Shown here piece after piece: positions 425 through 32,907 of a stretch of 32,907 nt of DNA. Numbering within the stretch: position 1 is the first letter of the stretch; every line of letters starts with the position of its first letter. A program made the translations under genes and the position numbers. Under the pieces are notes generated by a model. That model worked only from the letters and a program-made list of their open reading frames with translations. It searched no databases and was not told the DNA's origin. The DNA is from Macrostomum lignano (Eukaryota): NCBI GenBank assembly GCA_002269645.1, contig NIVC01004866.1, forward strand, positions 1 through 32,907, in the 5' to 3' direction.

Positions 425-622
425 ACGCGGTATTTGGCAGCACCAAAAACACGAAGGCCCCGGCCGTGAGGCAGTGATCGCTTTATTTATGCAAGTTGAA
501 GTTAAGCCTGCGATGTACATAGAGAGCGAACGTACATTAAATCAATACGATGATTCAGCTAATTATTTGTCACGATTGCTAACAGTTCAGACTGCCTCTA
601 AGGCAAGGAATAAAATATTACA
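425..622 (-). repeat. 3' LTR copy lacking its terminal 6 bp (TGTAAC on +)
   Basis: Matches 9798-9995 and carries all four variants diagnostic of the 9792 LTR rather than the 14263 LTR. The PPT (TTTCTCCCCCAC on +) follows at 623-634. Confidence 0.93.
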
Positions 623-762
623 TTTCTCCCCCACAAAAGGAGCATAGCAACAGGGAATAAAAAGATGAGAGTGAAACACAGCTAGCGAAATGTAGAGTAA
701 AAAGAGGAACGCAGACTGTAATATACATTTCAATCACAGTCTCTGACAGTCCATGGCCTCAG

Positions 763-3695: not shown

Positions 3696-6600
3696 TAGTG
3701 TTCGACATAGTGGCTCTTTTATGTTTTACATGGTGGCTCTTTTATGTTTGAAACGATGGCTTTTTAATGTCTGACATGGTGGCTCTTTTATGTTTTACAT
3801 GGTGGCTCTTTTATGTTTGACATGGTGGCTCTTTATTGTTTGACATGGTGGCTCTTTAATGTTTAACCTGGTAGCTCTTTTATTTTTGACACAGTGGCTC
3901 TTTAATGTTCGACAAAGTGGCTATGTAATGTTTGACAAGGTGGCTTTTAAATGTTTGACATGGTGGCTCCTTAATGTTCAAAATGGTGGCTCTTTAATGT
4001 TTGACATAAAGACATATATATAATTGACATGGTGGCTCTTAAATGTTTGACATGGTGGCTCTTTATTGTTTGACATGGTGGCTCTTTAATGTTTGACATG
4101 GTGGCTCTTTAATGTTCTAAATGGTGGCTCTTTAATGTTTGACATGGTGGCTCTTAAATGTTTGACATGGTAGCTCTTTTATGTTGACATGGTAGTTCTT
4201 TTAGGTTTGACATGGTGGCTGGTTAATGTTCGGTATAATGGCCCTTTAATGTTCAACGTAGTGGCTCTTTAATATTCTACATGGTGGCTCTTTTATGTTT
4301 AACATGGTGGCTCTTTAATGTTCGAAATGGTGGCTCTTTTGTTTTACATGGTGGCTCTTTAATGTTTTACATGGTGGCTCTTAAATGTTTGACATGGTAG
4401 CTCTTTTATGTTGACATGGTAGTTCTTTTAGGTTTGACATGGTGGCTGGTTAATGTTCGGTATAATGGCCCTTTAATGTTCAACGTAGTGGCTCTTTAAT
4501 ATTCTACATGGTGGCTCTTTTATGTTTAACATGGTGGCTCTTTAATGTTCGAAATGGTGGCTCTTTTGTTTTACATGGTGGCTCTTTAATGTTTGACATG
4601 GTGGCTCTTTAATGTTTGACATAAAGTCCCTTATATGTTCGATATGGTGGCTCTTTTATGCTTGACATGATGGCTCTTTTAGGTTTAACATGATGGCTCT
4701 TTTAGGTTTAACATGGTGGCTCTTTTAGGTTTAACATGGTGGCTCTTAAATGTTTGACATAAAGTCACTTATATGGTTGACATGGTGGCTCTTTTATATT
4801 CTACATTTTGGCTCTTAAATTTTCGACATGGTGGCTCTTTTAGGTTTGACATGGTGGCTCTTTAATGTTTGACACGGTGGCTCTTTAATGTTTAACATAG
4901 TGACTCTTTTAGGTTTGACATGGTGGCTCTTTAATGTTTGACATGGTGGCTCTTTAATGTTTAACATAGTGACTTTTAATGTTTGACATAATGGCTCTTT
5001 AATGTTCGACATGGTGGCTCTTTAATATTCGACATGGTGTCTCTTTAATGTTCGACATGGTGGCTCTTTTATGTTTTACATGGTGGCTCTTTTATGTTTG
5101 AAACGATGGCTTTTTAATGTCTGACATGGTGGCTCTTTTATGTTTTACATGGTGGCTCTTTTATGTTTGACATGGTGGCTCTTTATTGTTTGACATGGTG
5201 GCTCTTTAATGTTTAACCTGGTAGCTCTTTTATGTTTGACACAGTGGCTCTTTAATGTTCGACAAAGTGGCTATGTAATGTTTGACAAGGTGGCTTTTAA
5301 ATGTTTGACATGGTGGCTCCTTAATGTTCAAAATGGTGGCTCTTTAATGTTTGACATAAAGACATATATATAATTGACATGGTGGCTCTTAAATGTTTGA
5401 CATGGTGGCTCTTTATTGTTTGACATGGTGGCTCTTTAATGTTTGACATGGTGGCTCTTTAATGTTCTAAATGGTGGCTCTTTAATGTTTGACATGGTAG
5501 CTCTTTTATGTTCGACATGGTGGCTCTTTTAGGTTTGACATGGTGGCTCTTTTAGGTTTGACATGGTGGCTCTTTAATGTTCTAAATGGTGGCTCTTTAA
5601 TGTTTTACATGGTGGCTCTTAAATGTTTGACATGGTAGCTCTTTTATGTTGACATGGTAGTTCTTTTAGGTTTGACATGGTGGCTGGTTAATGTTCGGTA
5701 TAATGGCCCTTTAATGTTCAACGTAGTGGCTCTTTAATATTCTACATGGTGGCTCTTTTATGTTTAACATGGTGGCTCTTTAATGTTCGAAATGGTGGCT
5801 CTTTTGTTTTACATGGTGGCTCTTTAATGTTTGACATGGTGGCTCTTTAATGTTTGACATAAAGTCCCTTATATGTTCGATATGGTGGCTCTTTTATGCT
5901 TGACATGATGGCTCTTTTAGGTTTAACATGATGGCTCTTTTAGGTTTAACATGGTGGCTCTTTTAGGTTTAACATGGTGGCTCTTAAATGTTTGACATAA
6001 AGTCACTTATATGGTTGACATGGTGGCTCTTTTATATTCTACATTTTGGCTCTTAAATTTTCGACATGGTGGCTCTTTTAGGTTTGACATGGTGGCTCTT
6101 TAATGTTTGACATGGTGGCTCTTTAATGTTTAACATAGTGACTTTTACTGTTTGACATAATGGCTCTTTAATGTTCGACATGGTGGCTCTTTAATATTCG
6201 ACATGGTGTCTCTTTAATGTTCGACATGGTGGCTCTTTTATGTTTTACATGGTGGCTCTTTTATGTTTGAAACGATGGCTTTTTAATGTCTGACATGGTG
6301 GCTCTTTTATGTTTTACATGGTGGCTCTTTTATGTTTGACATGGTGGCTCTTTATTGTTTGACATGGTGGCTCTTTAATGTTTAACATGGTAGCTCTTTT
6401 ATGTTTGACACAGTGGCTCTTTAATGTTCGACAAAGTGGCTATTTAATGTTTGACAAGGTGGCTTTTAAATGTTTGACATGGTGGCTCCTTAATGTTCAA
6501 AATGGTGGCTCTTTAATGTTTGACATAAAGACATATATATAATTGACATGGTGGCTCTTAAATGTTTGACATGGTGGCTCTTTATTGTTTGACATGGTGG

Positions 6601-8127
6601 CTCTTTAATGTTCGACAAAGTGGCTCTTTAATGTTCTTCATGGTATAGCTCTTTTATCTTCGACATGGTGGCTCTTTAGGTTTGACATGGTGGCTAATTT
6701 AGGTTTGACATGGTGGCTCTTAAATGTTTGACATGGTGGCTCTTAAATGTTTCAAATGGTGGCTCTTCAATGTTTTACATGGTGGCTCCTAAATGTTTGA
6801 CATGGTGGCTCGTAAATGTTTGACATGGTTGCTCTTTAATGTTCGAAATGGTGGCTCTTTTGTTTTACATGGTGGCTCTTTAATGTTTGACATGGTGGCT
6901 CTTTAATATTCTACATTGTGGCTCTTAAGTGTTCGAAATGGTGGATCTTTTAGGTTTGACATGATGGCTGTTTAATGTTTGACATGATGGCTCTCTAATG
7001 TTTGACATGATGGCTCTGTAATGTTTGACATGGTAGCTCTTTTATGTTGACATGGTGGTTCTTTTAGGTTTGACATGGTGGCTGTTTAATGTTCAGTATA
7101 ATGGCTCTTTAATGTTCAACATAGTGGCTCTTTAATATTCTACATGGTGGCTCTTTTATGTTTAACATGGTGGCTCTTTAATGTTCGAAATGGTGGCTCT
7201 TTTGTTTTACATGGTGGCTCTTTTAGGTTTAACATGGTGGCTCTTTTAGGTTTAACATGGTGGCTCTTTTAGGTTTAACATGGTGGCTCTTTTATGCTTG
7301 ATATGGTGGCTCTTTATTGTTTAACATGGTGACTTTTAATGTTTGACATGGTGGCTCTTTAATGTTCGACATGGTGGCTCTTTAATGTTTGGCATGGTGG
7401 CTCTTTAATGTTTTACATGGTGGCTCTTTTATGTTCGACATGTTGGCTCTTTAATGTTTGACATGGTAGCTCTTTAATGTTCGACAAAGTGGCTCCTAAA
7501 TGTTTGACATAGTGGCTCTTTAATGTTCAAAATGGTGGCTCTTTTATGTTTGACATGGTGGCTCTTTAATGATTGACATAGTGGCTCTTTAATGTTCGAC
7601 ATAGTGGCTCTTTAATATTTGACAATGTGGCTTTTGAATGTTTGACATGGTGGCTCTTTAATGTTTGACATGGTAGCTCTGTTATGTTTGACATGGTGGC
7701 TCTTCTAGTTTTGACGCGAAGGCTCTTAAATGTTTAACATGGTGGCTCTTTAATGTTTCACATGGTGGCTCTTTAATGTTTTACATGGTGGCTCTTTTAT
7801 GTTTAACATGGTAGCTCTTTAATATTTTACACGGCGGCTCTTTTATGTTCGACATGGTGGCTCTTTAATGTTCGAAATGGTGGCTCTTTAATGTTCGAAA
7901 TGGTGGCTCTTTAATGTTCGAAATGGTGGCTCTTTAATGTTTGACATAAAGTCACTTATATGTTTTACATGGTGCCTCTTGAATATTAGACATGGTGGCT
8001 CGTTTATGTTTGACATGGTGGCTCTTTTATGTTTGACATGGTAACTCTTTTATGTTCGATATGTTGGCTCTTTAATGTTCGACATGGTGGCTCTTCTATG
8101 TTTGACATTGCGCTTCTTTTATGTTTA
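3696..8127. repeat. Tandem satellite, 23-bp unit (consensus CATGGTGGCTCTTTAATGTTTGA), about 190 units, with higher-order repeats
   Basis: Unit starts at 4028, 4051, 4074 and 4097 give a 23-bp period. Rare variant blocks recur at 3751/5101/6270 (AAACGATGG) and at 4011/5361/6530 (GACATATATA). Confidence 0.97.
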
Positions 8128-8733: not shown

Positions 8734-9330
8734 TGGCTTGATCGTCTGCAAAGAGTAGGATGAGTGGGAAAGCAGATCTCGTAAGAGAGCGCCTAGCGCT
8801 AGAGAGTTCAAGATATTCAACAATGTCGTCAATATATAGTTCAAAAAGAATGGTAGAGAGAGGGTTGCCTTGAAGAACACCTTTAGATATTGGGATTGGC
8901 TGGGTTTCATCATCATCATCATCTTTTTTTAGAATGAAGCAGGCATTTTTATGCATGTTCTTGATAAGTTCCATCATTTGACCTTTAATACCCTGATTAT
9001 CCGTTTTGCACCAAAGGGTCGGTTGATTTAAGCTATCGAAGGCTTTTTCATATTCAACAAATCCAATAAAGAGTTCTTCTTTGTTGTAGATGGATTGGTT
9101 TATAATGTTGTAAAGATTAAAACATTGGTCGATTGTGCTGTGATTGGGCTTGAAACCGTATTGGTATTTTGATATAAGATTGTTTGCGTATGCTAGGTTT
9201 TCGAGTCTGGATTTAATAATTTGGCAAAAGAGCTTGCCAAGAATTGGTTGAATGCAGATTCCTCTGTAATTGTTGGGGTCGGCACTGCTGCTGATGGATG
9301 ATGTTCAGCCAAATTTGAAAAAAATATTTA
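8734..9330 (-). mobile_element. LINE reverse-transcriptase domain fragment (CR1/L2/RTE-like)
   Basis: Minus-strand translation: DPNNYRGICIQPILGKLF...QYGFKPNHSTIDQCF...FVEYEKAFDSLNQPTLW...KGVLQGNPLSTILFELYIDD...LFADD. It is truncated immediately after the FADD motif. Confidence 0.9.
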
Positions 9331-9791: not shown

Positions 9792-9995
9792 TGTAACACG
9801 CGGTATTTGGCAGCACCAAAAACACGAAGGCCCCGGCCGTGAGGCAGTGATCGCTTTATTTATGCAAGTTGAAGTTAAGCCTGCGATGTACATAGAGAGC
9901 GAACGTACATTAAATCAATACGATGATTCAGCTAATTATTTGTCACGATTGCTAACAGTTCAGACTGCCTCTAAGGCAAGGAATAAAATATTACA
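9792..9995 (-). repeat. 3' LTR (204 bp)
   Basis: TGTAACAC...ATATTACA. It differs from the 14263-14462 LTR by 3 substitutions and one 4-bp indel. Confidence 0.96.
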
Positions 9996-10007
9996 TTTCT
10001 CCCCCAC
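9996..10007 (-). other. Polypurine tract
   Basis: GTGGGGGAGAAA on the minus strand directly abuts the 3' LTR. Confidence 0.9.
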
Positions 10008-10135
10008 AAAAGGAGCATAGCAACAGGGAATAAAAAGATGAGAGTGAAACACAGCTAGCGAAATGTAGAGTAAAAAGAGGAACGCAGACTGTAATATACA
10101 TTTCAATCACAGTCTCTGACAGTCCATGGCCTCAG

Positions 10136-13100
10136 TCACTCAGCGCTCACACCGAGGTAGTCCGGAGGACGCCGCACCCTGGCCGCGGGTACCGCCGCTC
10201 GGCCTGGCTCGACTCCGGGGCGACCTCGTGGGTCACCGGCTGCTCGCGGAGCTGCTCCGCATCGGCCTGGGCTGCGAGCCGCCTGCGCAGCCGGTTCACG
10301 TGCACCCAGTGGACCGGCCGAATGCCGAAGGCGCGGCGGATGCGCACCGAGTGGCCGCGCTGCTCGAGCACCGTCCAGTCCGGCTCCCAGTACGGCGCCA
10401 GCTTCGATCGCCGCATCTCGATTCTGAGCAACACCTGGGTGCCTTGCGGAAACTGCGGCAGGTCCGACGCCTTCTTGTCGTGCGCCGCCTTCTGTTGCTG
10501 TCCGGCGGTCACCAGGTTTTCCTCAACGAACTCGTGGATGCGGGCCAACCGACGCTCCAGCAGCGCCGAGTAGGTGCCGATGTCATACTGCTGCTCGCTG
10601 GCCTGCACCTGCGGTGGAAGCTGCGGGTCGCGGCCGGTCATCACAGTCAGCGGCGTCACCTTGGTTGAGCTGTGGACCCTGGAGTTGTAGGACAGGACCA
10701 CCAGCGGCAGCTGCTCCTCCCAGCTGGACTCGGTCTCGGTGAACAGCCGCAGCAGTTGCAACAGCGACTTGTTGCCGCGCTCCACAAGGCCGTTTCCCTG
10801 CGGATGGTAGGGCGATGTGCGCGTCTTCCTGATGCCCAGCACTCGCAGCGTCTCCTGGGACAGCTCGCTCTCGAAGTTCGCGCCCTGATCCGAGTGGATG
10901 ACCGATGGGACTCCGAATAGCGAGAAAACCTTGACTGCAGCGTCCGCGATGGTCTTGGCAGTCTGGTCTGGCATCGGCATGGCGGTCAGGAACTTGGAGA
11001 ACTGGTCCTGCATCACCAGCAGGTATAGCTGTTGCCGCGGTCTGACAGCGGCACCTTCAGCACGTCGATGGCCACAGTCTGCCAGGGCTTGCCGATCGGC
11101 ATCTCTCCAAGTGGGGCCGCGGGGCGCTGCTGCGCCTTCTTTAGCTGGCAGGTCTGGCACTCCTGGCAGAAACTCACCACGTCGCTCTGCAGTCCCGGCC
11201 AGTACGCGGCCTGCTTCAGCGTATCGGCCATCTTCTCTGGCCCGAAGTGGCCGCCGATGCCTTCGTGGAAGTCGGTCAGGAACTGGCGCCGCAGCGACTC
11301 CGGAATCACAGGAACGTCTCTCGGTCCTGCGGCGTCGTTGAATGCCCGGCAGAGAAAGCCATCTTGGATCCTCAGCTTCCGCCAGATGCGGCTGAGGTGT
11401 CTCAGGCTGGTGTCCGACCATCTTGGTGGAGTCGTGCTGTCCTTCTCCAGCGCCGCGAGGACCAGCTTGAGCTTCGGATCGGCAAGTTGCGCCTGCCGCA
11501 TCTCCTGATTGGACACCTTCGGCTTTAGCTCCGTTGCCGACGCTCCGATCACCTCGCCGTGGCTTTCGTGCATCCTGGACAGGCCGTCCGCCTCCACGTT
11601 GTCGACGCCCTTGGTATACTTGATGGTGAAGGCGAACTCCTGCAGCAGCAACCGCCAGCGCCCAAGCCGGCCATGGCTGTCGACCCGCTGAGAATTCAGA
11701 AACGTGAGTGGGCAGTGGTCGGTGAAGACCGTGAAGTGCCGGCAAGCAGGTAGTGCCTGTAGGTCTTCAGGGCGTGCAGGATAGCCAGGCACTCCTTCTC
11801 GACAGTTGAGTAGCCCTTCTCCGGTGCCGTAAGCGCTCTGCTGCAGTACTCAATCACCTGGTCTCCTTGCTTGAGCACGATGCCGACTCCGGTGTTGCTG
11901 GCATCCGTGTAGAGCTGGAACTCCTTGGAGAAGTCCGGGTGGCCGATGATCGGCGGCTGCTGCAGGGCCTCCTTGAGACGTCGGAATGCCGTGCCGCACT
12001 CGCTGGTCCACTCGAACTTCTCTGTTTTGCTCGTCAGTCTGTGCAGCGGCCCGGCGATGTCGGAGAAGCTCGGCACGTACTTCCTGTACTGGTTGCAGAG
12101 GCCAGGAACTGCCGCACCTGCGTTGGCGAATGCGATATCGGCCACTCCTGGATAGCGCGCACCTTCTCAGGGCTCACGGTGGCACCCTTGGCCGAGAACA
12201 CGGTGCCGAGAAAAGTGACCTCCGGCAGGCCTAGCTGGCACTTGCGCCTCGGACGGTGAGCCCAGCGCCTCTGATCTTCTCGAAGACTTCTCGCAGGTGC
12301 CGGAGATGCTCAGCCTTCGATCTGGAGAAGCACAGCGTGTCGTCCATGTAGGTGAAGGTCTGCGCGGCGCCTTTGAACACGCGGTTCATTAGGATGGTGA
12401 ACGAGCTCGGGCCGCCGCAGACGCCCTGCGGCATCCGCTTGAACTGGTACAGCGGCTTTCCGGGCCCTGGGCTGAAGGCCGTCTTCTGCTTGTCTTCCGG
12501 CTTCATCGGAATTTGGAAGTAGCCGCCGTTCAGGTCGATCACCGAGAAAATCTCGTTGCCAGCCAACTTGTCCTTGACGAAGTCCATCTGCGGAATGCCC
12601 TGCGCTGACCGCACCGTCTTCTTGTTCAGCTCGCGGTAATCGATCGTCAACCGCAGGTCACCGTTATTCTTCCGCACGTACACTGGAGTCGCCACGTACG
12701 GGCTGTCCGACTCCTCGATGACGTCATTGTCCAGCAGCTCCTGAATCAGCTTCCTCACCTCGGGCTCCCAGTGCACCGGAGCTTCCTCGGCGGGATCCGC
12801 ACCGGAACATCGTCAGTCAGCGGGATGCTGTGCTCGTGTCGATCCGTCAGCCCTGGCCGCCTGGTGAAAATGTCGCTGAACTCGCGCACCAAAGCTCGGA
12901 TGTCCGGGTCCTCCGCGACTGGCAGGTCGATCTTGGTGAAATCCGGCACCAGCTTCTCTTCAATGTCCTCGAGCTGACTGTCAGCATCGAGGTGACTCAT
13001 GCCGTTGATCACACAAGAGTCCTTTGATGGGGTCTCTGCTGCACTGTCGCTGAAGTCCAGGCACATGTTGCAGGCCTTGATGAAGTCCAGCCCGATGATG

Positions 13101-13480
13101 ACGGCAGCAACCAGACCTTCAGACACGTAAAACGGGTGCCGCCGCTCGATGCCGCCGAGCGACACTGCCAGGCTGGCCACCTGCCGCACCGGCACCGCTT
13201 GCTGGTTGACTGCCCGCAGCTCCAGGTGCACGCTCTCCAGCTGAGCTGGCCGCATGCTCTGCAGAACCCGCTTGTCCACGATTGACACCTGGCTGCCTGA
13301 GTCGATAATCGCCGTGACGTCCACGCCTCCGATCCTGCACTGCAGCTTGGATGTCGCCGAGTTCGGCCTGATGACGACAGCTGCTGCGCTGCTGCTGGCT
13401 GCACCGCTCCCCTCTGCGCCCAGGAACAACCCACTCACGCTGGGGCCCGCGCTCAGAACTGGCCAGGGGTGCGGGCTCTG
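10136..13480 (-). CDS. pol: Pol polyprotein (aspartic protease, RT, RNase H, integrase), broken by several 1-2 bp indels in this assembly
   Basis: Motifs IIDSGSQVS (PR), YMDD (RT), YTDAS (RH), HEGIGGHFG...CQECQTC (IN zinc finger) and SDQG...NGLVER (IN core). The stop at 10136 is inferred from the frame preserved in the duplicate. The 5' boundary is approximate. Confidence 0.88.
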
Positions 13481-14243
13481 CCCCGGCCTGTGCCGTATCC
13501 CGGCGGATGATTGCAGTTCCTGGCGATGTGGCCGCGGCGGTGGCAGTTCCAGCAGGTCACCTCGCGCTGTCTCCTCGCACTGCGAATCGCGCAGGAGTCC
13601 GAAACCTTTGAGCCCAGCTTTGCCGCCAGGTCTTGGACCGTCGCCTGCAGCGAGCTGACCGCAGCCCTCAGTTCTGCCGTCTCCGCGCTGCCTGCAGCTC
13701 CGGCTGCCGCTGCAAGAGGCTGCTTGAATCCGTCCGTGGTGGCAGAAGGCAGCTCCAGTAGCAGTTGTGCCCGTGCGAGAGCGTCACTCACGGTCTTGGC
13801 TGACGCGTCCGCTCTGATCTGCTTGCTGATGTCCACCGGCAGTCCGCGATGAACTGGTGAGTCAGCATGGTGGCCGTTGCGCCTGCCTCGCTGATGCCAG
13901 CGTCCTTTAGCAGCTGCTTCAGGTGATAGAGAAAGAGCCGAGGAGATTCGCCCGGCAGCAGCTTCCGGCTCTCGAATGCATCCAGCGCTGAGAATTGCTG
14001 GCTGTCCGGGTGAAATGCCTGGCTCAGAGCTTTGGTCACTTTGCTGTAGTCGCTCTTGCTATTCTCGTCGAGCTCAAGAAAAACAGCCAGAGCCTCACCA
14101 TCCAAAAACGTTGGCAGGTGCAAATGCTTGTCATTTACCCACTTGTTGGCTGCCGCGCACAGCTCAAACCGCTGGAGCCACTCCTTAAAGTTGCCTGAGC
14201 TGAACGCCCTAGGAATCGCACGGTGACTGCCACCATCTGCCAT
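13453..14243 (-). CDS. gag: Gag with CCHC zinc knuckle (one frameshift near 13845)
   Basis: The ATG at 14243 gives MADGGSHRAIPRAF...WLQRFELCAAANKW, and the C-terminal piece has CWNCHRRGHIARNC. Adding one G restores QFIAGLPVDISKQIR. Confidence 0.85.
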
Positions 14244-14249
14244 AGTACA

Positions 14250-14260
14250 CTCTGCTACCA
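14250..14260 (-). other. Primer binding site complementary to tRNA-iMet 3' end
   Basis: TGGTAGCAGAG lies 2 nt inside the 5' LTR boundary. The eukaryotic initiator tRNA-Met ends ...CTCTGCTACCA, an 11-nt match. Confidence 0.9.
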
Positions 14261-14262
14261 CT

Positions 14263-14462
14263 TGTAACACGCGGTATTTGGCAGCACCAAAAACGCGAAG
14301 GCCCCGTGAGGCAGTGATCGCTTTATTTACGCAAGTTGAAGTTAAGCCTGCGATGTACATAGAGAGCGAACGTACATTAAATCAATACGATGATTCAGCT
14401 AATTATTTGTCACGATTGCTAACAGTTCGGACTGCCTCTAAGGCAAGGAATAAAATATTACA
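14263..14462 (-). repeat. 5' LTR (200 bp)
   Basis: Direct repeat of 9792-9995, bounded by TG...CA and followed by the TSD CATA. Confidence 0.96.
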
Positions 14463-15196: not shown

Positions 15197-15470
15197 AAAT
15201 CTGCATTCAATTTCGGCAAACTGGCATCAGCTATATGGCCGCACATCCAAACTGCATTGGAATTCGACAAACCGAGAACCAATTTCGGCAAACTGCATCC
15301 AATTTCGGCAACTCGAGTTTCTATTTAGACAAACTGATATTCAACTTCGGCAAACTGCATTCAATTTCGGCAGACAGCGCCTCGTGACACAGACTGTCTA
15401 TGTAAATAGGTACGCATCTATACCCAAAACTGATTTTCAATTTCGGCAAACTGCACTCAATTTCGACAGC
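15197..15470. repeat. Degenerate 20-bp tandem/clustered repeat (AAACTGCATTCAATTTCGGC), about 10 copies
   Basis: AATTTCGGCA recurs at 15281 and 15301 (20-bp spacing), with further copies at 15201, 15341-15371 and 15428-15466. Confidence 0.75.
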
Positions 15471-17893: not shown

Positions 17894-18259
17894 TTAAATA
17901 ACTATACTAAACAAATTTGTTAAAAAAGTTAATCGACTGCGGCTTTTTGATTCATCTCTAATTTGAACAGTTTACAGTGTTGCTCGTTGCTAATCGCGAT
18001 TAAAAGTGAACGGTGAACATACTTTTCTGACAACAAGAATTTCTAATCACGAAAACGAAGAAAAAAGGAATATAATATGTATGGTTATTGTATTAATAAA
18101 TAGTTCGTAATAATTGGTAAGTTCGCAATTATTAGTAGTTATATCGCGACCAAAGTACGCCTGAGGCAATACTTAAGGGACAAAAAAGAACAAAGAAACT
18201 TCATGGACTAATATTTGCTTATCGTTAAATAGGCAAACAAGACTATTATAATAACAGCA

Positions 18260-19951
18260 TCATTCAACGTCAGATACACGTACTTCTTCAGGGAGCTGCT
18301 TTTCTGAGCCTTGAATATCTTTGCGTTGTCCTTGCGGATCACCCAACTGCTGAGCGCTCGATACTTTGGTCTTCTTCCTGCCAAAGGAGGCGATGTCGAA
18401 GATGAGCTCGAACAGCTCGCACAGGGTGAGCAGAGACATTCCCAGGTAGATGCCCATGATGCCGCCGACGTCCGAGATGAAGTTCTGCAAACCGTAGTCG
18501 ATCGAGAAGTTCATCCGATCGCACAGAACTCGATGCGGCTTGAAGTGCACTTTGAGCATGTTGCTGCGGATGTATGAGGACACGATCGACTCGTTTCCGT
18601 TCACGACGAGGTCGAGAGCCGGAACACTCAGATTCTTAGACTTGGCCCTCATCCAAACAGGTTCGATGGAGCTGCTGACGAACGGCATCATTGAGCTCTG
18701 AGTGGGCCAGTCGGAACTGGAGATGGTCGCGCTGTACTGCAGTGTGCTGCAAAGTCGCTTAGCTTTACATGCTTCTTTCGATATTCCGTCGAACTGAGTG
18801 GTGAGAGGTTCCAGAGATGGGTCGCTAAAAAATACCAAGAAGTTTGGATCACCTGTAAGGTTAAGTGCGAACTTCTTTCCACGCAGAGGCCACGGAAGAG
18901 GACCGGCATCGCTTGACAGATTGACGAGCTGCTGCATCTGTCGGTGGAACTCGTAGTAGAAGCAGTACGAGTAGCTGTACGAGTGCTTGTATGGAGTCTC
19001 GTCGTACGGGTTCACGAACTGAACGTCCGGCGGGTCGCTCAGACAGTCGAACTGACCAGCCTTGTACACCTGCTGCGTCATGTCGATCTCGACGGTGTGG
19101 GACTTTCCGGGTCCAAGCGAGAACGAGCTCACGAAATCGGACGGATACTCACCTGGAGGCGTGAGGAACACTTTCACACCTGCTTGTCTGTCGGGTCCGT
19201 TGTAGTCGGCGACATCGAGCGACCAGTCGGACACAGGAATGAGAGTTCGTCCTGCGTACACCATCTTGCGGATCGAGTGTCCGCTCGATGCGAGTCCTTG
19301 GAACGCCGAGTCCGTAACCAGGGTGACCACAATGCCGGATGATGAGCCGGTCTGTTCAATCTGTTGTTGCCACGTGCTGTTCAGAGTCCACTTGAGACAG
19401 CGCAAGTACATCGGATGGTAGAAGGTCTGCGCTTCGATGGGCGCATACTGGGCCATTCCAAATAGCTTAAACTTGAAGTCACTCGTGATGATGCTCTGTT
19501 CGTTTCGGTGAGCCAGAGCATCAATCAACAGCTGATATGATATTGACTGAGGATAAGCACGGGATAGCCTCATTTCTTGGGGTGTAGTTTCTGTTAATCC
19601 GTTTATTTGCAATCCCCGCCGTAGGACGGTTTGAGAGCTATTGAGCTGATCGTTGATTGCAGCAGCCGATGCCTCATCAATAGTAGCAGAGTAGCTGCCA
19701 GAGATCGGGTTCTCGAAACAGGCGTACACATCCGGGAACTGGAAGTTGAGACTGTTTCCATCAAGCGAGCTGGTGACCTGCCGAGACTGCAGCTTGACAA
19801 CGAATTGGTAGAATCCGTAAAAGAAGAGTCCCGACATCAGCAGCATCAGGATGAGCCAGAAAGCTCGCACAACCAACGGTTTGCTGCTCACTACTCTGGG
19901 CAGTCCGTGCGCTGAGGTGGAAGACATGGCTTCCTTGATCGGCTGCAGCAT
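18260..19951 (-). CDS. DEG/ENaC (amiloride-sensitive sodium channel family) subunit, paralog A, 563 aa, single-exon CDS
   Basis: N-terminal TSAHG motif, TM1 (AFWLILML...), FPDVYAC, AGVKVFL/SLGPGKSHTV palm motifs, and TM2 ISDVGGIMGIYLGMSLLTLCE with the GxS filter. Confidence 0.93.
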   Translation of the reverse strand: MLQPIKEAMSSTSAHGLPRVVSSKPLVVRAFWLILMLLMSGLFFYGFYQFVVKLQSRQVTSSLDGNSLNFQFPDVYACFENPISGSYSATIDEASAAAINDQLNSSQTVLRRGLQINGLTETTPQEMRLSRAYPQSISYQLLIDALAHRNEQSIITSDFKFKLFGMAQYAPIEAQTFYHPMYLRCLKWTLNSTWQQQIEQTGSSSGIVVTLVTDSAFQGLASSGHSIRKMVYAGRTLIPVSDWSLDVADYNGPDRQAGVKVFLTPPGEYPSDFVSSFSLGPGKSHTVEIDMTQQVYKAGQFDCLSDPPDVQFVNPYDETPYKHSYSYSYCFYYEFHRQMQQLVNLSSDAGPLPWPLRGKKFALNLTGDPNFLVFFSDPSLEPLTTQFDGISKEACKAKRLCSTLQYSATISSSDWPTQSSMMPFVSSSIEPVWMRAKSKNLSVPALDLVVNGNESIVSSYIRSNMLKVHFKPHRVLCDRMNFSIDYGLQNFISDVGGIMGIYLGMSLLTLCELFELIFDIASFGRKKTKVSSAQQLGDPQGQRKDIQGSEKQLPEEVRVSDVE

Positions 19952-20042
19952 AAATGTTTCTGGTTGCAGTTTCTGGGTTCCAGATTTAGTCTCGCATTTA
20001 CTGCTCGTAGAGAAGTTTTAGGTCGACAAACTTATCAGCATG

Positions 20043-25705: not shown

Positions 25706-27424
25706 TCAAGGCTCGCTTGAGATGCTGCTGATGCTGAGGCTCTTTGTAGACTGTTTTGGCGGCGGCGCGTGACTCTTTTTTCTGACTCCCAACTGCTGGA
25801 TTGAAGAAGCTGCCGGCTTGGAGCTTGACGCTCTTGCTTTCTTCCTGCCAAAGGAGGCGATGTCGAAGATAAGCTCAAACAGCTCGCACAGGGTGAGCAG
25901 AGACATTCCCAGGTAGATGCCCATGATGCCGCCGACGTCCGAGATGAAGTCCTGCAAACCGTAGTCGATCGAGAAGTTCATCCGATCGCACAGAACTCGA
26001 TGCGGCTTGAAGTGTACTTTGAGCATGTTGCTGCGGATGTATGAGGACACGATCGACTCGTTTCCGTTCACGACGAGGTCGAGAGCCGGAACACTCAGAT
26101 TCTTAGACTTGGCCTTCATCCAAACAGGCTTGATGGAGCTGCTGACGAACGGCATCATTGAGCTCTGAGTGGGCCAGTCGGAACTGGAGATGGTCGCGCT
26201 GTACTGCAGTGTGCTGCAAAGTCGTTTAGCTTTACATGTCTCTTTCGATTTTACGTCGATCTGACTGGTGAGAGGTTCCAGAGATGGGTCGCTAAAAAAT
26301 ACCAAGAAGTTTGGATCACCTGTAAGGTTAAGTGCGAACTTCTTTCCACGCAGAGGCCACGGAAGAGGACCGGCATCGCTTGACAGATTGACGAGCTGCT
26401 GCATCTGTCGGTGGAACTCGTAGTAGAAGCAGTACGAGTAGCTGTACGAGTGCTTGTATGGAGTCTCGTCATACGGGTTCACGAACTGAACGTCCGGCGG
26501 GTCGCTCAGACAGTCGAACTGACCAGCCTTGTACACCTGCTGCGTCATGTGGCATGTGACCACGTCAGGTGTGGGACTTTCCGGGTCCCAGCGAGAAAGA
26601 GCTCACGAAATCGGACGGATACTCACCTGAAGGCGTGAGGAACACTTTCACACCTGCCTGTCTGTCGGGTCCGTTGTAGTCGGCGACATTGAGCGACCAG
26701 TCGGACACAGGAATGGGAGTTCGTCTTGCGTACACCATCTTTTGGATCGAGTGTCCGCTTGATGCGAGTCCTTGGAACGACGAGTCCGTAACCAGGGTGA
26801 CCACAATACCGGATGATGAGCCGGTCTGTACGATCTTTTGTTGCCACGTGCTGTTCAGAGTCCACCTGAGACAGCGCAAGTACATCGGATGGTAGAAGGT
26901 CTGCGCTTTGATGGACACATATTCGGCCATTCCGTAACCTGTTTTAAACTTGAAGTCACTCGTGATGATGCTCTGTTCGTTTCGGTGAGCCAGAGCATCA
27001 ATCAACAGCTGATATGATATTGACTGAGGATAGGAACGTGAGAGCGTCATCTCTTGGGTGTAGCGTCCATTGATCCGTTTCTTTGAAGTTTTCGCCGTAG
27101 GAGTGTTTGAGAGCCAATGAGCTGAGCGTTGATTGCAGCAGCCGATGCCTCATCAATAGTAGCAGAGTAGCTGCCAGAGATCGGGTTCTCGAAACAGGCG
27201 TACACATCCGGGAACTGGAAGTTGAGACTGTTTCCATCAAGCGAGCTGGTGACCTGCCGAGACTGCAGCTTGACAACGAATTGGTAGAATCCGTAAAAGA
27301 AGAGTCCCGACATCAGCAGCATCAGGATGAGCCAGAAAGCTCGCACAATCAGCGGTTTGCTGCTCACTACTCTGGGTAGTCCGTGTACTGATGTTGAAGC
27401 CATGGCTTTCTTGACTTGCTGCAT
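25706..27424 (-). pseudogene. DEG/ENaC paralog C, disrupted
   Basis: Full-length homolog. It has a 1-bp homopolymer loss near 27055 (possible assembly error) and a 10-to-17-bp replacement at 26551-26567 that introduces an in-frame TGA and a frameshift. Confidence 0.85.
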
Positions 27425-28296
27425 GCTTGATTTTTCTGGGTTTTAATTTTTTGAATGCGAAGCTTCCTCTCTGACCGGGATGACTTGCTATTTTTGTGAT
27501 GCTTTTTTAACCATTTGGCGATCGCCTCCGTTCTTCGCCCCCCGGCGGACGGCTCATTGTGCATTGTCTGATCGCATATCTATGTAAAGTACATTGCTCA
27601 ATGCTCAATATCGGCACCGAACAAATCTTCTAAATAAATATTATGGCTCCGCCCATGTGGAGGCTTTGAGCTTTTTCTACATTTTTTAACTTTCTTTTTT
27701 CGTCGGAGTCCGCCATTCATTTTCGCCACTGCTGTACCACTCACATGAAAATCAATTCTATTGAACTTGAAAGTGACTGGTCATACGCAGACAAGTCTGC
27801 TGAAGTTAAAATATGGGTTGCATTGTAACACTGCAACTATTTACTCAGCTAGACGTTGCTCACAAAAAATACGAACGTATTGTACAGCACCTTTTACAAA
27901 CAGATGCCATTGAAACAGACTTAGTAAAAGGCTTTTTGGTATAGAGAAAGTGCATTTTGCTGGTTGAAGCCACATAAACGCATTGGAAGCAGGGCAAACG
28001 ATAGAACCTTAAATCAATACTCTTTTGGAACAAATGGTTTCAAAAAGATCCCACTGAATTATGGATATGCTATGAAAATTTGCTGTGCTACTGCAAACGC
28101 ACTGTGTAAAATTAAAATCAACTATTTATCAGAGAGCGAGAGTTGTGTCCATCAACTTGGGAAGAGAGCCAAAGCGATTTTGGGAGTGTTTGTACAGCTT
28201 AGAGATCGCGATTTATGAGTAGCAGCCAAAATTAAATCTTAGCAAAGTTTTGAAACACTGCATTATAAGTGCAGCACACTAGAGCTCTGAAGAAGA

Positions 28297-28568
28297 ATGC
28301 AGCAAGTACTGGATGCCACAGCATCTTCCGAAACAGACCGACTGTCACGGGTTGGAAGCAAGACGCTGTACGAGCGTATATGCGATTGGAAACAGGTGGT
28401 GGAAACAGGTTGAACTTCCAGTTTTCCTGTAAGCTTTTTGTTATGAGAACCCGATCTCTGGTAGCTACTCTGCGACTGTGGATGAGGCATCAGCCGCTGC
28501 AATCAATGCTCAGCTCAGTGGCTCGCAAGTTGTAATGAGGCGAGGCTTTCAATGCTTGGGTACGTCAG
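28297..28568 (+). pseudogene. Inverted DEG/ENaC 5' fragment (paralog D) lacking TM1
   Basis: MQQVLDATASSETDRLSRVGSK aligns to MQQVKKAMASTSVHGLPRVVSSK. After a deletion spanning TM1, 28445-28528 matches C 27107-27190 at 75/84 nt, mostly at synonymous sites. Confidence 0.8.
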
Positions 28569-29390
28569 TGTTACGTTTTCTACTTCAACAATTATTACAT
28601 CCTCAAGGCTATCATCGGACATAAAAGTATAAGTCGAAGAAGCTTTGTTTAGAGTACCGCGATTCACGGCTTATATTTGCCTCTAACGAGCTCACACAGA
28701 TGATTGTTCTTTGCGGTACTGTAGTATTCGGCTCTTAAGGTAATAAAAGGTCCTACCCTAGACAATAGACATGCAGAGAGAACTAAAGTCCGTTTAGTTT
28801 TTGTCTATACACAACATTCCCCTTTGTCAATATTTTTTCTCCGGATCTGCATGCTTTAACTATACTGTAGGCGATCCGATTTCTCAGCTTGCTTCGATCG
28901 CTCAGTATCCTTGTAGGCTCTCCTCTGGTCCCGCCTGAGATTCTCCTCGGCTTGGGACGTCTTAGACCCGCTGAGTTGATTCACTCTCTCGCCGCTCTTT
29001 CTCGGTAGTAGTTTGGTCGCTCTGAACTCTCCTAGGATCCTCCAGAATAGTTCAGAGAGTAGTTCAAATGATAGATGACGAGCCTGGACACAACGGTTTG
29101 TTGTGTCCAGGTAATTCTGCTCTGACGATTTGGTCGACGTGTCGCTTCCAGGCTTGTCCGTTGACCAACAGTGCGGACGATCACCTTGGCAGAAATCCAC
29201 CTATTCTCTCGCTCCCTTCTGAAGTCCAACGTCAGAACTGAGTCTCCTTGGATGCAACCGACGCAGAGTTGAACAATAAAGATTGGAGTCAGGTGAATGA
29301 AGAGCTGTCTTTTCATGAGCTGTAGCTCGCATACAAGCTAGACCGCTTGCTCCCTCGAGCTAAGACTTAAATTGGCGCAGTACTGCGCTT
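28569..29390 (-). mobile_element. Decayed 3' end of a Ty3/gypsy element (integrase C-terminus, PPT, probable 3' LTR 28569-28816)
   Basis: The minus strand has QGDSVLTLDFRRE..NRWISAKVI (SH3-like integrase tail) and ERSKQAEKSDRLQYS*. A PPT-like AAAGGGGAA (28817-28825) is directly followed by TGTTGTG, and the putative LTR ends ...GTAACA at 28569. There is no second LTR to confirm the boundary. Confidence 0.55.
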
Positions 29391-29662
29391 TGCAATGTGC
29401 TTTTCTGTTCTGATCTCTGTTTACGTTTTTATATTTTTCACTGCATTTGTTTTGTATTTTCTTGTTATTTTTCTATTATATATTCAGCAGTTAAGAACGT
29501 GTATCTTTTTTTCAACAGCTTACCAGCATCAAAATTTATCAGCACAAAACTTCTTAGTCTGTAGAATTTTCTTTAATTGATTATTGAATAAGAGCAAGGC
29601 GGTGGTTCATTCAGTTATTTATCAACGGTACTTAGATCAAAGAGAAAACAAGGGAGAGTGAG

Positions 29663-29922
29663 TGATTTGTTTCACTGCCGCCGCCGTGTATTTATAGCTT
29701 TGTTATTGTCTTCCGGAAATTTCTAGAAAGATTTAGCTAATTTTAAAAAAGCGAAATAACCCTTTAATTATATACATTACGTAAATATAATTAGAACATT
29801 AATACTTAAGTGATAATTAATTATTTACTATTTATATGCGTATGTTATAAATTAGCTGCTAACTCAAAGAAGTTTCTGGAAATAGTTTTTGACTTTTAGA
29901 AATCTGAAGAAATTTCGGGAAA
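29663..29922 (-). promoter_or_regulatory. Heat-shock-type core promoter: three perfect HSEs, TATA box and Inr-like start
   Basis: 4-unit HSE at 29710-29729 (TTC/GAA/TTC/GAA at 29711/16/21/26) and 3-unit HSEs at 29868-29882 and 29908-29922. TATAAATA lies at 29689-29696 (minus) and TCACTC near 29663. Confidence 0.7.
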
Positions 29923-30896
29923 GTCATTAAAGTACGCTACAAGTCTATTTTTTGTCCTGAGAAAGGGCACATAAACTGCATGTGCCGCTGTCCAATATTG
30001 GATAATCTACTGCGATGCATTAGGCTGTAGTATTGAAGTATTGAATTTACATTTAGCAAAACGTCATGACGTCATTCGTGATCTACATGTACAAATCGCA
30101 CACAGTGAATCAAATCACGGAGTACATTTGCTCATCATGTAAAGTAAATTAAACGAGAAAGTAAATTCACTTAGGCAAAGTAAATTAACCTGCTGAACGC
30201 ATGGTGCCGGCTAGGCAAATTACCTTTCAGCAGTAAATTTGCTCCCAGGAAGATTTTGCGGGAGAATAATTTGCCGAAATTTACTTCACCAGCGCAGCAG
30301 CGGCGTCAGTTAATTTACGTTAATAAACGTTAATCGCGTGACGAAATTTATTATTGTTTGAAAGTTAATTAACCATTAAGCTACATGTATTAGTTATAAC
30401 CCTCAATATTAACCCTCGTTTTAAAGGGGCAATAAAATTTTGTGCTGAGAAAATAAAGACTTCCTGTCTACGTAGTGTATTTTTCGGCGAAAATTGGCCT
30501 TCAAAACTTTTTCCGTGAAACGTGATCCTCGCTTCCTGCATATACGCTGCTTGTCCTAGTCTAAGCAAGGCTTAACCTGTTCGGTTTAGAGCTAAATAAA
30601 AAATTCAAGTTCGAATTTCTGAAAAGGCATTATGAATGACGAGCATTTCTAACCAGGACAAAGAGGAAAAGAGAACAGATTATCATGTGCAGCTATTTTA
30701 ATGTTAATAGAAGTTTGTCATTAACCCTTATTTTGTATCGCCTCAAAAGAACCGGCAAAGCTATACTCGTACTCCAGGAAAGAAGAGAACTAAATAATTG
30801 ACTAATATTTGCATATTGCTTGAGATCTGCATAACAGTACATGTACTATTACAATAATAGCTTCCTTCAACAGCAGATACTTCCTCACGGAGGATG

Positions 30897-32562
30897 CTAT
30901 TCTGTGCACTGATTATCGCTACTTTGTTCTTGCAGATCACCTAGCTGCTGAGCGCTCGATACTTTGGTCTTTTTCCTGCCAAAGGAGGCGATGTCGAAGA
31001 TGAGTTCGAACAGCACGCACAGGGTGAGCAGAGACATTCCCAGGTAGATGCCCATGATGCCGCCGACGTCCGAGATGAAGTCCTGCAAACCGTAGTCAAT
31101 GGATCGCAAGTTCATCCGAAGTGCACTTTGAGCATGTTGCTCGATGCGGCTTGAAGTGCACTTTGAGCATGTTGCTGCGGATGTATGAGGACACGATCGA
31201 CTCGTTTCCGTTCACGACGAGGTCGAGAGCCGGAACACTCAGATTCTTAGACTTGGCCCTCATCCAAACAGGTTGGATTGAGCTGCTGACGAACGGCATC
31301 ATTGAGCTCTGAGTGGGCCAGTCGGAACTGGAGATGGTCGCGCTATACTGCAGTGTGCTGCAAAGTCGTTTAGCTTTACATGCCTTTTTCGATTTTACGT
31401 CGATCTGACTGATGAGAGGTTCCAGAGATGGGTCGCTAAAAAATACCAAGAAGTTTGGATCACCTGTAAGGTTGAGTGCGAACTTCTTTCCACGCAGAGG
31501 CCACGGAAGAGGACCGGCATCGCTTGACAGATTGACGAGCTGCTGCATCTGTCGGTGGAACTCGTAGTAGAAGCAGTACGAGTAGCTGTACGAGTGCTTG
31601 TATGGAGTCTCGTCGTACGGGTTCACGAACTGAACGTCCGGCGGGTCGCTCAGACAGTCGAACTGACCAGCCTTGTACACCTGCTGCGTCATGTCGATCT
31701 CGACGGTGTGGGACTTTCCGGGTCCAAGCGAGAACGAGCTCACGAAGTCGGATGGATACTCACCTGGAGGCGTGAGGAACACTTTCACACCTGCCTGTCT
31801 GTCGGGTCCGTTGTAGTCGGCGACATTGAGCGACCAGTTGGACACAGGAATGGGAGTTCGTCTTGCGTACACCATCTTGCGGATCGAGTGTCCGCTCGAT
31901 GCGAGTCCTTGAAACGACGAGTCCGTAACCAGGTGACCACAATGCCGGATGATGAGCCGGTCTGTTCAATCTGTTGTTGCCACGTGCTGTTCAGAGTCCA
32001 CTTGAGACAGCGCAAGTACATCGGATGGTAGAAGGTCTGCGCTTTGATGGACACATATTCGGCCATTCCGTAACCTGTTTTAAACTTGAAGTCACTCGTG
32101 ATGATGCTCTGTTCGTTTCGGTGAGCCAGAGCATCAATCAACAGCTGATATGATATTGACTGAGGATAGGAACGTGAGAGCGTCATCTCTTGGGGTGTAG
32201 CGTCCATTGATCCGTTTCTTTGAAGTTTTCGCCGTAGGAGTGTTTGAGAGCCAATGAGCTGAGCGTTGATTGCAGCAGCCGATGCCTCATCAATAGTAGC
32301 AGAGTAGCTGCCAGAGATCGGGTTCTCGAAAACAGGTGTACACATCCGGGAACTGGAAGTTGAGGCTGTTTCCATCAAGCGAGCTGGTGACCTGCCGAGA
32401 CTGCAGCTTGACAACGAATTGGTAGAATCCGTAAAAGAAGAGTCCCGACATCAGCAGCATCAGGATGAGCCAGAAAGCTCGCACAATCAGCGGTTTGCTG
32501 CTCACTACTCTGGGTAGTCCGTGCACTGATGTTGAAGCCATGGCTTTCTTGACTTGCTGCAT
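30897..32562 (-). pseudogene. DEG/ENaC paralog E, disrupted
   Basis: Full-length homolog with homopolymer indels near 32330 and 31933 (possible errors). A templated duplication/replacement at 31098-31141 breaks the frame before TM2. Confidence 0.85.
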
Positions 32563-32761
32563 GCTTGGTTTTCTCGTTTTAATTTTTTGAATGCGAAGCT
32601 TCCTCTCTGACCGGGATGACTTGCTATTTTTGCGATGCTTTTTTAAGTAGTTGGCAATCGCCTCCGTTCTCCGCCCCGGCGTACGGCTCAGTGTACATTT
32701 CTGATCGCATTTTTATGTAATGTACATTGCTCAATGCTCAATATCGGCACCGAACAAATCT

Positions 32762-32805
32762 AGAACTTTCTAGAACCCCTAGAACTTTCTGGAACATTCT
32801 AGAAG
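32762..32805. promoter_or_regulatory. Heat-shock element array (perfect 3-unit plus perfect 5-unit nGAAn inverted repeats) upstream of paralog E
   Basis: GAA/TTC/GAA at 32763/68/73 and GAA/TTC/GAA/TTC/GAA at 32782/87/92/97/32802, 200 bp upstream of the ATG at 32562. Confidence 0.75.
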
Positions 32806-32907
32806 CTTACTATGTGGGTATATTTTGAGGGTGGTGCGTGCGATCTTGAGAGACTACTTTTCATGATTGTTGCTATCGAAGACAGATCAACTACATGGAT
32901 CTCTCTC

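Follow-up and report, generated by a model that had tools for sequence, protein, structure and literature searches.

Heat-activated long terminal repeats (LTRs) are exemplified by ONSEN (ATCOPIA78), an element of Arabidopsis and other Brassicaceae that is activated directly via the heat-shock factor (HSF) pathway, and whose solo or dispersed LTRs can render neighbouring genes heat-responsive. In the flatworm Macrostomum lignano, Ty3/Mdg4 LTR families of the Mag, CsRN1, and Gmr1/Osvaldo clades have independently gained heat-shock elements (HSEs), with one to four canonical HSEs placed upstream of the TATA box (Ustyantsev et al., Mob DNA 2025, PMC12801592; preprint 10.1101/2024.12.18.629116). 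The families named in that work are Mlig-id115|Mag (= ID206), the CsRN1 families Mlig-id55 and Mlig-id36, and Mlig-id38 of the Gmr1/Osvaldo clade. After 2 h at 37 C, expression of four families with HSEs is increased more than 250-fold, mutation of the HSEs abolishes the induction of a Mag LTR reporter, and solo LTRs of these families lie less than 2 kb from two mildly induced host genes (PMC12801592). Here we examine a 32,907-nucleotide stretch of M. lignano DNA (NCBI GenBank assembly GCA_002269645.1, contig NIVC01004866.1, positions 1 to 32,907 of the forward strand, hereafter the window), in which a promoter module of the heat-shock type stands on the minus strand within a cluster of DEG/ENaC ion-channel genes. 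Judged by its sequence, this module is most likely the solo LTR of a heat-activated and presumably repetitive LTR retrotransposon, an interpretation that we hold with somewhat better than even confidence.

The motifs of the module, and those that follow it, are given here in the direction of the predicted transcription.

29899-29921, minus strand: distal HSE 1, TTCccGAAatTTC, three perfect units (29921-29909) with an imperfect extension to 29899
29869-29881, minus strand: distal HSE 2, TTCcaGAAacTTC, three perfect units
29711-29728, minus strand: proximal HSE, TTCtaGAAatTTCcgGAA, four perfect units
29689-29696, minus strand: TATA box, TATAAATA, 14 nt 3' of the proximal HSE
29656-29665, minus strand: initiator (Inr)-like sequence, TCACTCACTC, which contains TCACTC, with the predicted start A at 29663
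29580-29585, minus strand: AATAAT
29572-29577, minus strand: ATTAAA, a predicted poly(A)-signal variant
29518-29526, minus strand: donor-like CTG/GTAAGC, with its G at 29523, 34 nt outside the proposed LTR

Distal HSE 1 continues as ttCAGatTTC, which extends it to five units, one of them imperfect, and the minus-strand bases directly 5' of TTCccGAAatTTC read ...gactTGTAGCGTACTTTAATGACT. The distal HSEs are separated from the proximal HSE by approximately 140 bp of very AT-rich DNA. An HSF promoter is expected to carry at least three contiguous inverted nGAAn units together with correctly placed TATA and Inr motifs; the arrays found here have four, three, and three units, and the predicted start within TCA(+1)CTC lies 33 nt past the first base of the TATA box, followed on the minus strand by an A-rich leader. 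As far as its motifs can tell, the module is therefore a complete HSF-type promoter, with HSE, TATA box, Inr, and distal HSEs. An earlier, sequence-only reading of this DNA had described the same HSEs, TATA box, Inr, distal HSEs, and splice donor at 29523, and we found all of them on the minus strand where it had placed them. The position of the HSE upstream of the TATA box likewise stands, although the spacing, previously put at 13 bp, is 14 nt by our count.

These arrays are highly unlikely to have arisen from base composition. Perfect arrays of at least three alternating GAA/TTC units occur exactly five times in the whole 32.9 kb window, at 29711-29728 (four units), at 29869-29881, 29909-29921, and 32763-32775 (three units each), and at 32782-32804 (five units), and all of them fall at two spots, within 29711-29921 or 32763-32804. 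For the window as a whole, a first-order Markov model predicts 0.455 arrays, with a maximum of 4 among 1000 simulations, in agreement with the previous estimate that the five perfect arrays clustered at two spots compare with fewer than one expected per 33 kb. Under the local AT-rich composition (29300-30900, 1.6 kb) the expectation falls to 0.023 arrays, as opposed to the three observed, and none of 20000 simulations with this composition gave three or more. Although the AT-rich surroundings might be thought to favour fortuitous GAA/TTC-rich low-complexity sequence, these simulations rule out a chance origin of the module and, together with the presence of a TATA box and an Inr at the correct spacing, leave this explanation with a vanishingly small probability.

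Despite its architecture, the promoter is not followed by a gene of the expected kind. The open reading frames (ORFs) of at least 60 amino acids (aa) in 27629-29663 produced no meaningful Pfam match, and six-frame translations of 27629-30970, the 3.3 kb between the channel paralogs C and D, produced no Pfam family, the only match being RDD at E = 0.07. No chaperone coding sequence (HSP70, HSP20, HSP90, DnaJ, or similar) appeared downstream of the promoter in these scans, which bears out the earlier claim that no heat-shock gene stands behind it. An hsp-style promoter without a chaperone gene is exactly how an HSE-containing LTR of M. lignano looks. The sequence-only reading was right in recognizing a non-random HSF-type promoter without a chaperone. 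It did not consider an LTR as the explanation, and named the interior of a repeat only as a finding that would refute its own view.

The same reading had assumed a gypsy remnant in the interval that separates the promoter from paralog C. A tblastn comparison of this interval with the gypsy pol of the window itself returned nothing significant, and an integrase-C-terminus-like pattern at approximately 29250-29080, noticed by eye in two frames, was rejected, as the reconstructed peptide had neither a homolog nor a Pfam family. With peptide, Pfam, and tblastn searches all negative, we do not claim a gypsy remnant at this position. The interval also contains a GC-richer block at 28856-29316 on the minus strand (50% GC compared with approximately 37% in its flanks), in which ORFs of 94 and 114 aa overlap. 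Neither ORF has a true homolog in the databases searched, and the sole match of the 114-aa ORF (28856-29200) among 1.84 billion representative proteins is a spurious translated tandem repeat. Nearby, TGTTGTGTAT is found at 28807-28816, preceded by AAAGGGGAA; this decamer equals the first 10 nt of the Mag ID206 LTR and is too short for significance.

A search for the boundaries of a mobile unit around the promoter identified the following candidate structure.

29560-29941, minus strand: candidate solo LTR, 382 bp, 29% GC, 5'-TGTAG...CTACA-3'
29942-29945, minus strand: upstream copy of the putative target-site duplication (TSD) GACT
29556-29559, minus strand: downstream copy of the putative TSD GACT

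The candidate LTR encloses all three HSEs of the module, the TATA box, the predicted start site, and the poly(A) signal. Its ends, TGTAG at 29941 and CTACA at 29560, provide TG...CA termini with a short terminal inverted repeat (TIR), the 3' end reading ...TTCTACA (to 29560) and then gact, and the bona fide gypsy LTR of the window has similar ends, TGTAA...TTACA, with the 4-bp TSD TATG. The internal order of the motifs would also suit an LTR, with the HSEs and TATA box (29921-29689) in the 5' part and ATTAAA (29577-29572) in the 3' part, implying a U3 region at approximately 29941-29664 and R/U5 at approximately 29663-29560 (R-U5 of approximately 104 nt). The fit is close at both ends: 20 nt separate the 5' end from the first HSE, and 12 nt separate ATTAAA from the 3' end. 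When overlapping matches are counted, the regular expression used for the M. lignano families scores four HSEs in the candidate LTR, and four is the maximum given for the CsRN1 lineages (PMC12801592). In the boundary search, which covered all TG...CA pairs around the module with direct repeats of 4-6 bp at their flanks, 29941-29560 was the only candidate with a 5-bp TIR. An identical search on 624 random 260-bp anchors, taken from both strands of the window, served as a control, and a fit as tight as that of the candidate LTR occurred at 0.5% of the anchors.

Comparison with the known heat-inducible systems places the module closest to the M. lignano elements. It shares with them several canonical nTTCnnGAAnnTTCn arrays preceding a TATA box, a length of a few hundred bp, TG...CA ends, and the lack of an attached host chaperone gene, and solo LTRs near host genes are known for these families. 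The first three units of the proximal HSE fit the nTTCnaGAAnnTTCc form of the validated Mag LTR, and TCTTTCTAGAAaTTTCC, 17 nt of this HSE, agrees with HSE3 of that LTR at 16 of 17 positions. The module is nonetheless much more AT-rich than the M. lignano HSE-LTRs and differs from them in the 140-bp AT-rich spacer between its distal and proximal HSEs, and the primers designed for quantitative PCR or cloning of the Mag families, the CsRN1 families, and hsp20 have no match in the window. Membership of the Mlig-id115|Mag (ID206) family, whose LTR sequence (preprint Fig. S3) was the sole published HSE-LTR sequence compared, was rejected: the best local alignment is the 17-nt HSE, and a nucleotide similarity of at least 80% was not reached.

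The more distant systems each share part of this architecture. ONSEN likewise bears HSEs in its LTR, but is a plant Ty1/Copia element whose HSEs were independently acquired. Drosophila-type hsp70 and other hsp promoters resemble the module in having a proximal multi-unit HSE near the TATA box, an Inr approximately 30 nt downstream, and further distal HSEs, but the module is not followed by an HSP or any recognisable coding sequence. Helitron1_CE of C. elegans is a mobile HSE carrier, as the module may be, and confers HSF-dependent induction; it is a rolling-circle DNA transposon, and no Helitron features were identified in the module.

Several observations weigh against a solo LTR and account for our restraint. 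In the control search, a TSD of at least 4 bp combined with a TIR of at least 5 bp arose by chance at 14% of the anchors when the search was wide and, as the criterion of tightness was chosen post hoc, the true significance lies between 0.5% and 14%. The AT-richness of the region has no sharp end at the proposed 3' boundary, 29560. Beyond the 17-nt HSE match, there is no similarity to the LTR of Mag ID206/Mlig-id115. No matching second LTR, as a full-length element would require, was found in the window; a TGG-type primer-binding site is missing past the 3' end of the candidate LTR, and no polypurine tract adjoins it; and no remnant of gag, reverse transcriptase, integrase, or gag-pol was found beside it. 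With primer-binding site, polypurine tract, and gag-pol all missing from its vicinity, only a solo LTR fits, which is also the form of such an element with the fewest diagnostic features. A second copy of the unit was absent from the window, from 21.5 kb of the M. lignano contig NIVC01004250, and from metagenome, prokaryote-genome, and viral collections examined by pattern scans. The lack of a second copy in these sequences and of a match to the single published HSE-LTR keeps the solo-LTR interpretation a proposal.

The alternatives to an LTR depend in part on the surrounding genes, which self-comparison of the window resolved into four minus-strand DEG/ENaC paralogs and a fragment of a fifth, confirming that the promoter lies in an ion-channel cluster.

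18242-19963, minus strand: paralog A, intact single-exon ORF at 18260-19951, 563 aa, PF00858
20764-22488, minus strand: paralog B, intact single-exon ORF
25742-27628, minus strand: paralog C (gene 25742-27424), the nearest same-strand gene to the promoter, with its ATG at 27424
28269-28687, plus strand: paralog E' fragment, the truncated and degenerate 5' part of a fifth DEG/ENaC gene (blastn, tblastn)
30845-32761, minus strand: paralog D (coding part 30897-32562)

The M. lignano protein A0A1I8GD92 shares 86% identity with paralog A and 95.5% with parts of paralog D, which places the window in Macrostomum. Relative to A, paralog C has indels of -1 and +7 nt and meets its first stop at codon 125, and paralog D has indels of +1, -1, and +10 nt and meets its first stop at codon 90. 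Because C and D are frameshifted in comparison with the intact A, both look like pseudogenes as assembled, and they probably are, unless the 1-nt indels are assembly errors. The E' fragment is approximately 80% identical to A, C, and D over 28397-28528 (blastn), and 28439-28687 was matched with E = 9e-17 (tblastn, query P0001). It sits between C and the promoter, head-to-head with C and antisense to the promoter's transcription, and its inverted orientation indicates that DNA between C and D was inverted or rearranged. The self-comparison revealed no same-strand paralog remnant downstream of the promoter, and the leader of the promoter has no similarity to the upstream region common to C and D; the earlier proposal of a promoter left over from a deleted paralog is thus unsupported.

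The second group of HSE arrays lies at the far side of paralog D.

32763-32804, no strand assigned: second HSE cluster, arrays of three and five perfect units

This cluster starts exactly at the end of the 95%-identical segment shared by C and D (27628 / 32761). Homology between the two HSE modules was considered and rejected, the alignment score of 43 not being significant against 33 +/- 5.5 for shuffled sequences. Read on the plus strand, the second cluster is followed after 14 nt by TATATTTT (32819-32826), the same spacing as in the first module, and then by ...CAACTACA and, directly adjoining it, TGGATCTCTCTC (32891-32907). By sequence alone, the CTACA/TGG at 32891-32898 could represent an LTR end and the adjoining primer-binding site, in an element that would continue beyond the window. 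On the minus strand, the cluster is upstream of paralog D, 200 bp from its ATG, and a CATAAAAAT box falls within that distance; no minus-strand LTR structure was found around the cluster within the window.

An orphan, single-copy host HSF promoter, which might drive a heat-inducible non-coding RNA or a very short ORF, or might be the relic of a heat-shock gene lost during the C-D rearrangements, is in our view unlikely, but deserves the most serious attention among the alternatives. Its architecture is that of classical hsp promoters, at 29% GC the module is similar in composition to the AT-rich intergenic DNA around it, the AT-richness runs on past the proposed LTR end, no other copy appeared in the sequences searched, and the region has clearly been rearranged, as the inverted paralog fragment and frameshifted paralogs attest. 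A lost heat-shock gene would nevertheless have disappeared without a trace, as six-frame translations of the 3.3 kb contain no chaperone domain, and the M. lignano hsp20 promoter and gene primers find no match in the window. A host promoter leaves unexplained the TGTAG...CTACA ends and the GACT duplication that tightly surround it, and the prior for an LTR is higher because such modules are known to be overrepresented among LTRs of Macrostomum. A non-coding RNA, which the sequence-only reading had listed as an option, is possible. Some other HSE-bearing mobile element, either a Helitron-type carrier or a unit resembling a miniature inverted-repeat transposable element (MITE), is distinctly improbable. 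The latter was suggested by a 16-nt inverted repeat (29662-29677 / 30103-30118), 94% complementary, that surrounds the promoter and has one arm overlapping the predicted start site, exactly where the repeat ends, with approximately 0.07 such repeat pairs estimated to occur by chance in the 3.4 kb region. However, none of the usual TSDs (TA, TTAA, TWA, or 8 bp) flanks the repeat arms, and on this ground a MITE bounded by them was rejected; in addition, six-frame scans contained no transposase remnant, and the window no other copy. The inverted repeat is probably a chance occurrence.

A role of the promoter in the expression of the channel genes is also improbable. As a heat-inducible alternative promoter of paralog C, spliced from the donor at 29523 to an acceptor near the ATG at 27424, the module would benefit from pointing the same way as C and from its good donor-like site, and such a function would be compatible with an exapted LTR. 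The second HSE cluster, located 200 bp ahead of the start codon of the sister paralog D, might speak for it, as might the solo HSE-LTRs known less than 2 kb from mildly induced genes (PMC12801592). Moreover, at least four PF00858 transcripts (MligTCv3c-562.7397, 562.1695, 562.9342, and 562.10172) are mildly heat-induced in M. lignano, with log2 fold changes of 1.1-3.0 (Table S2, 10.1101/2024.12.18.629116), although they cannot be linked to this locus. On the other hand, C is frameshifted (-1 and +7 nt relative to A), has a stop at codon 125, and is probably a pseudogene; an antisense paralog fragment lies within the 2.2-kb gap; and the ATTAAA of the LTR would tend to end transcripts. The earlier suggestion that the promoter drives C through a 5' untranslated region intron must therefore be judged unlikely, and our estimate for it falls below those for all of the other mobile or host origins considered above. 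We give a little more weight, while still regarding it as rather unlikely, to the broader possibility that HSE promoter modules, transposon-derived or not, have been recruited in the DEG/ENaC cluster, where they render certain channel paralogs responsive to heat. In this model the first module would act on C or yield a regulatory antisense RNA over E', and the second cluster would act from its position 200 bp upstream of the ATG of D. Taken together, the module is most likely neither the trace of a lost chaperone gene nor a regulator of the neighbouring ion-channel genes.

Returning to the solo LTR, it is plausible that an LTR retrotransposon that had captured HSEs inserted at this position, and that recombination between its two LTRs left the solo 382-bp unit (29941-29560, minus strand). 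The empty site before insertion would then have read ...AATAGACTAAGAAG... (also written ...AAAAATAGACTAAGAAGTTTTG...). Upon heat stress, HSF trimers would occupy the three HSE arrays in U3, and the proximal four-unit array, 14 nt from TATAAATA, would bring in the transcription machinery, resulting in initiation near 29663. In a full-length element, RNA starting at 29663 would serve as both genomic and messenger RNA. Conversely, the solo LTR would generate either a short heat-induced transcript ending at approximately 29555, past the ATTAAA of the LTR, or a read-through RNA, which would run antisense across the E' channel fragment and carry the frameshifted paralog C in the sense direction. In this model we infer HSF binding, heat induction, the start and termination sites, and the repetitiveness of the module from its sequence.

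The remainder of the window contains further repeats, including an LTR retrotransposon of a more conventional kind.

9792-14462, minus strand: full-length gypsy element, 200-bp LTRs 96.5% identical, TGTAA...TTACA, TSD TATG
425-3695: truncated second gypsy copy

Frameshifts interrupt the pol ORFs of the full-length element, which has TGGTAGCAGAG as its primer-binding site and GGGGGAGAAA as its polypurine tract; its LTRs contain no HSEs. Its closest database relative, 83% identical, is a 1-kb Logan contig (SRR31628414). Directly adjoining the truncated copy is a 4.4 kb satellite (3699-8126) with a 23-bp unit, TGTTTGACATGGTGGCTCTTTAA, present in approximately 193 copies with 81% matches and showing strong GC and AT skew. 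Segments 1-424 and 8812-9236 are 99% identical, and 425-3695 and 9798-13072 are 99.76% identical, reflecting either a recent duplication of the gypsy element and its flank around the satellite or an assembly artefact. A degenerate 20-21-bp tandem repeat of approximately six copies (15248-15372) lies between the gypsy element and paralog A.

If the module is a solo LTR, it would be an ordinary case of a phenomenon that was shown experimentally in M. lignano in 2025 (PMC12801592), and would explain why a textbook hsp70-style promoter stands here with no chaperone gene behind it. It would also add an HSE-LTR whose sequence is distinct from that of the single validated LTR, and could belong to a CsRN1 family, a Gmr1 family, or a new one; the candidate may be a new HSE-LTR family member, or possibly one of a family that has already been catalogued. 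Recruitment of HSE promoters by the channel cluster, if true, would link a sensory/ionic channel family to the heat-shock response in a flatworm, and would account for why several PF00858 transcripts of M. lignano are mildly induced by heat. With two independent HSE promoters in one DEG/ENaC cluster, the locus may offer a place to ask whether HSE-LTRs rewire animal genes to heat, as ONSEN does in plants.

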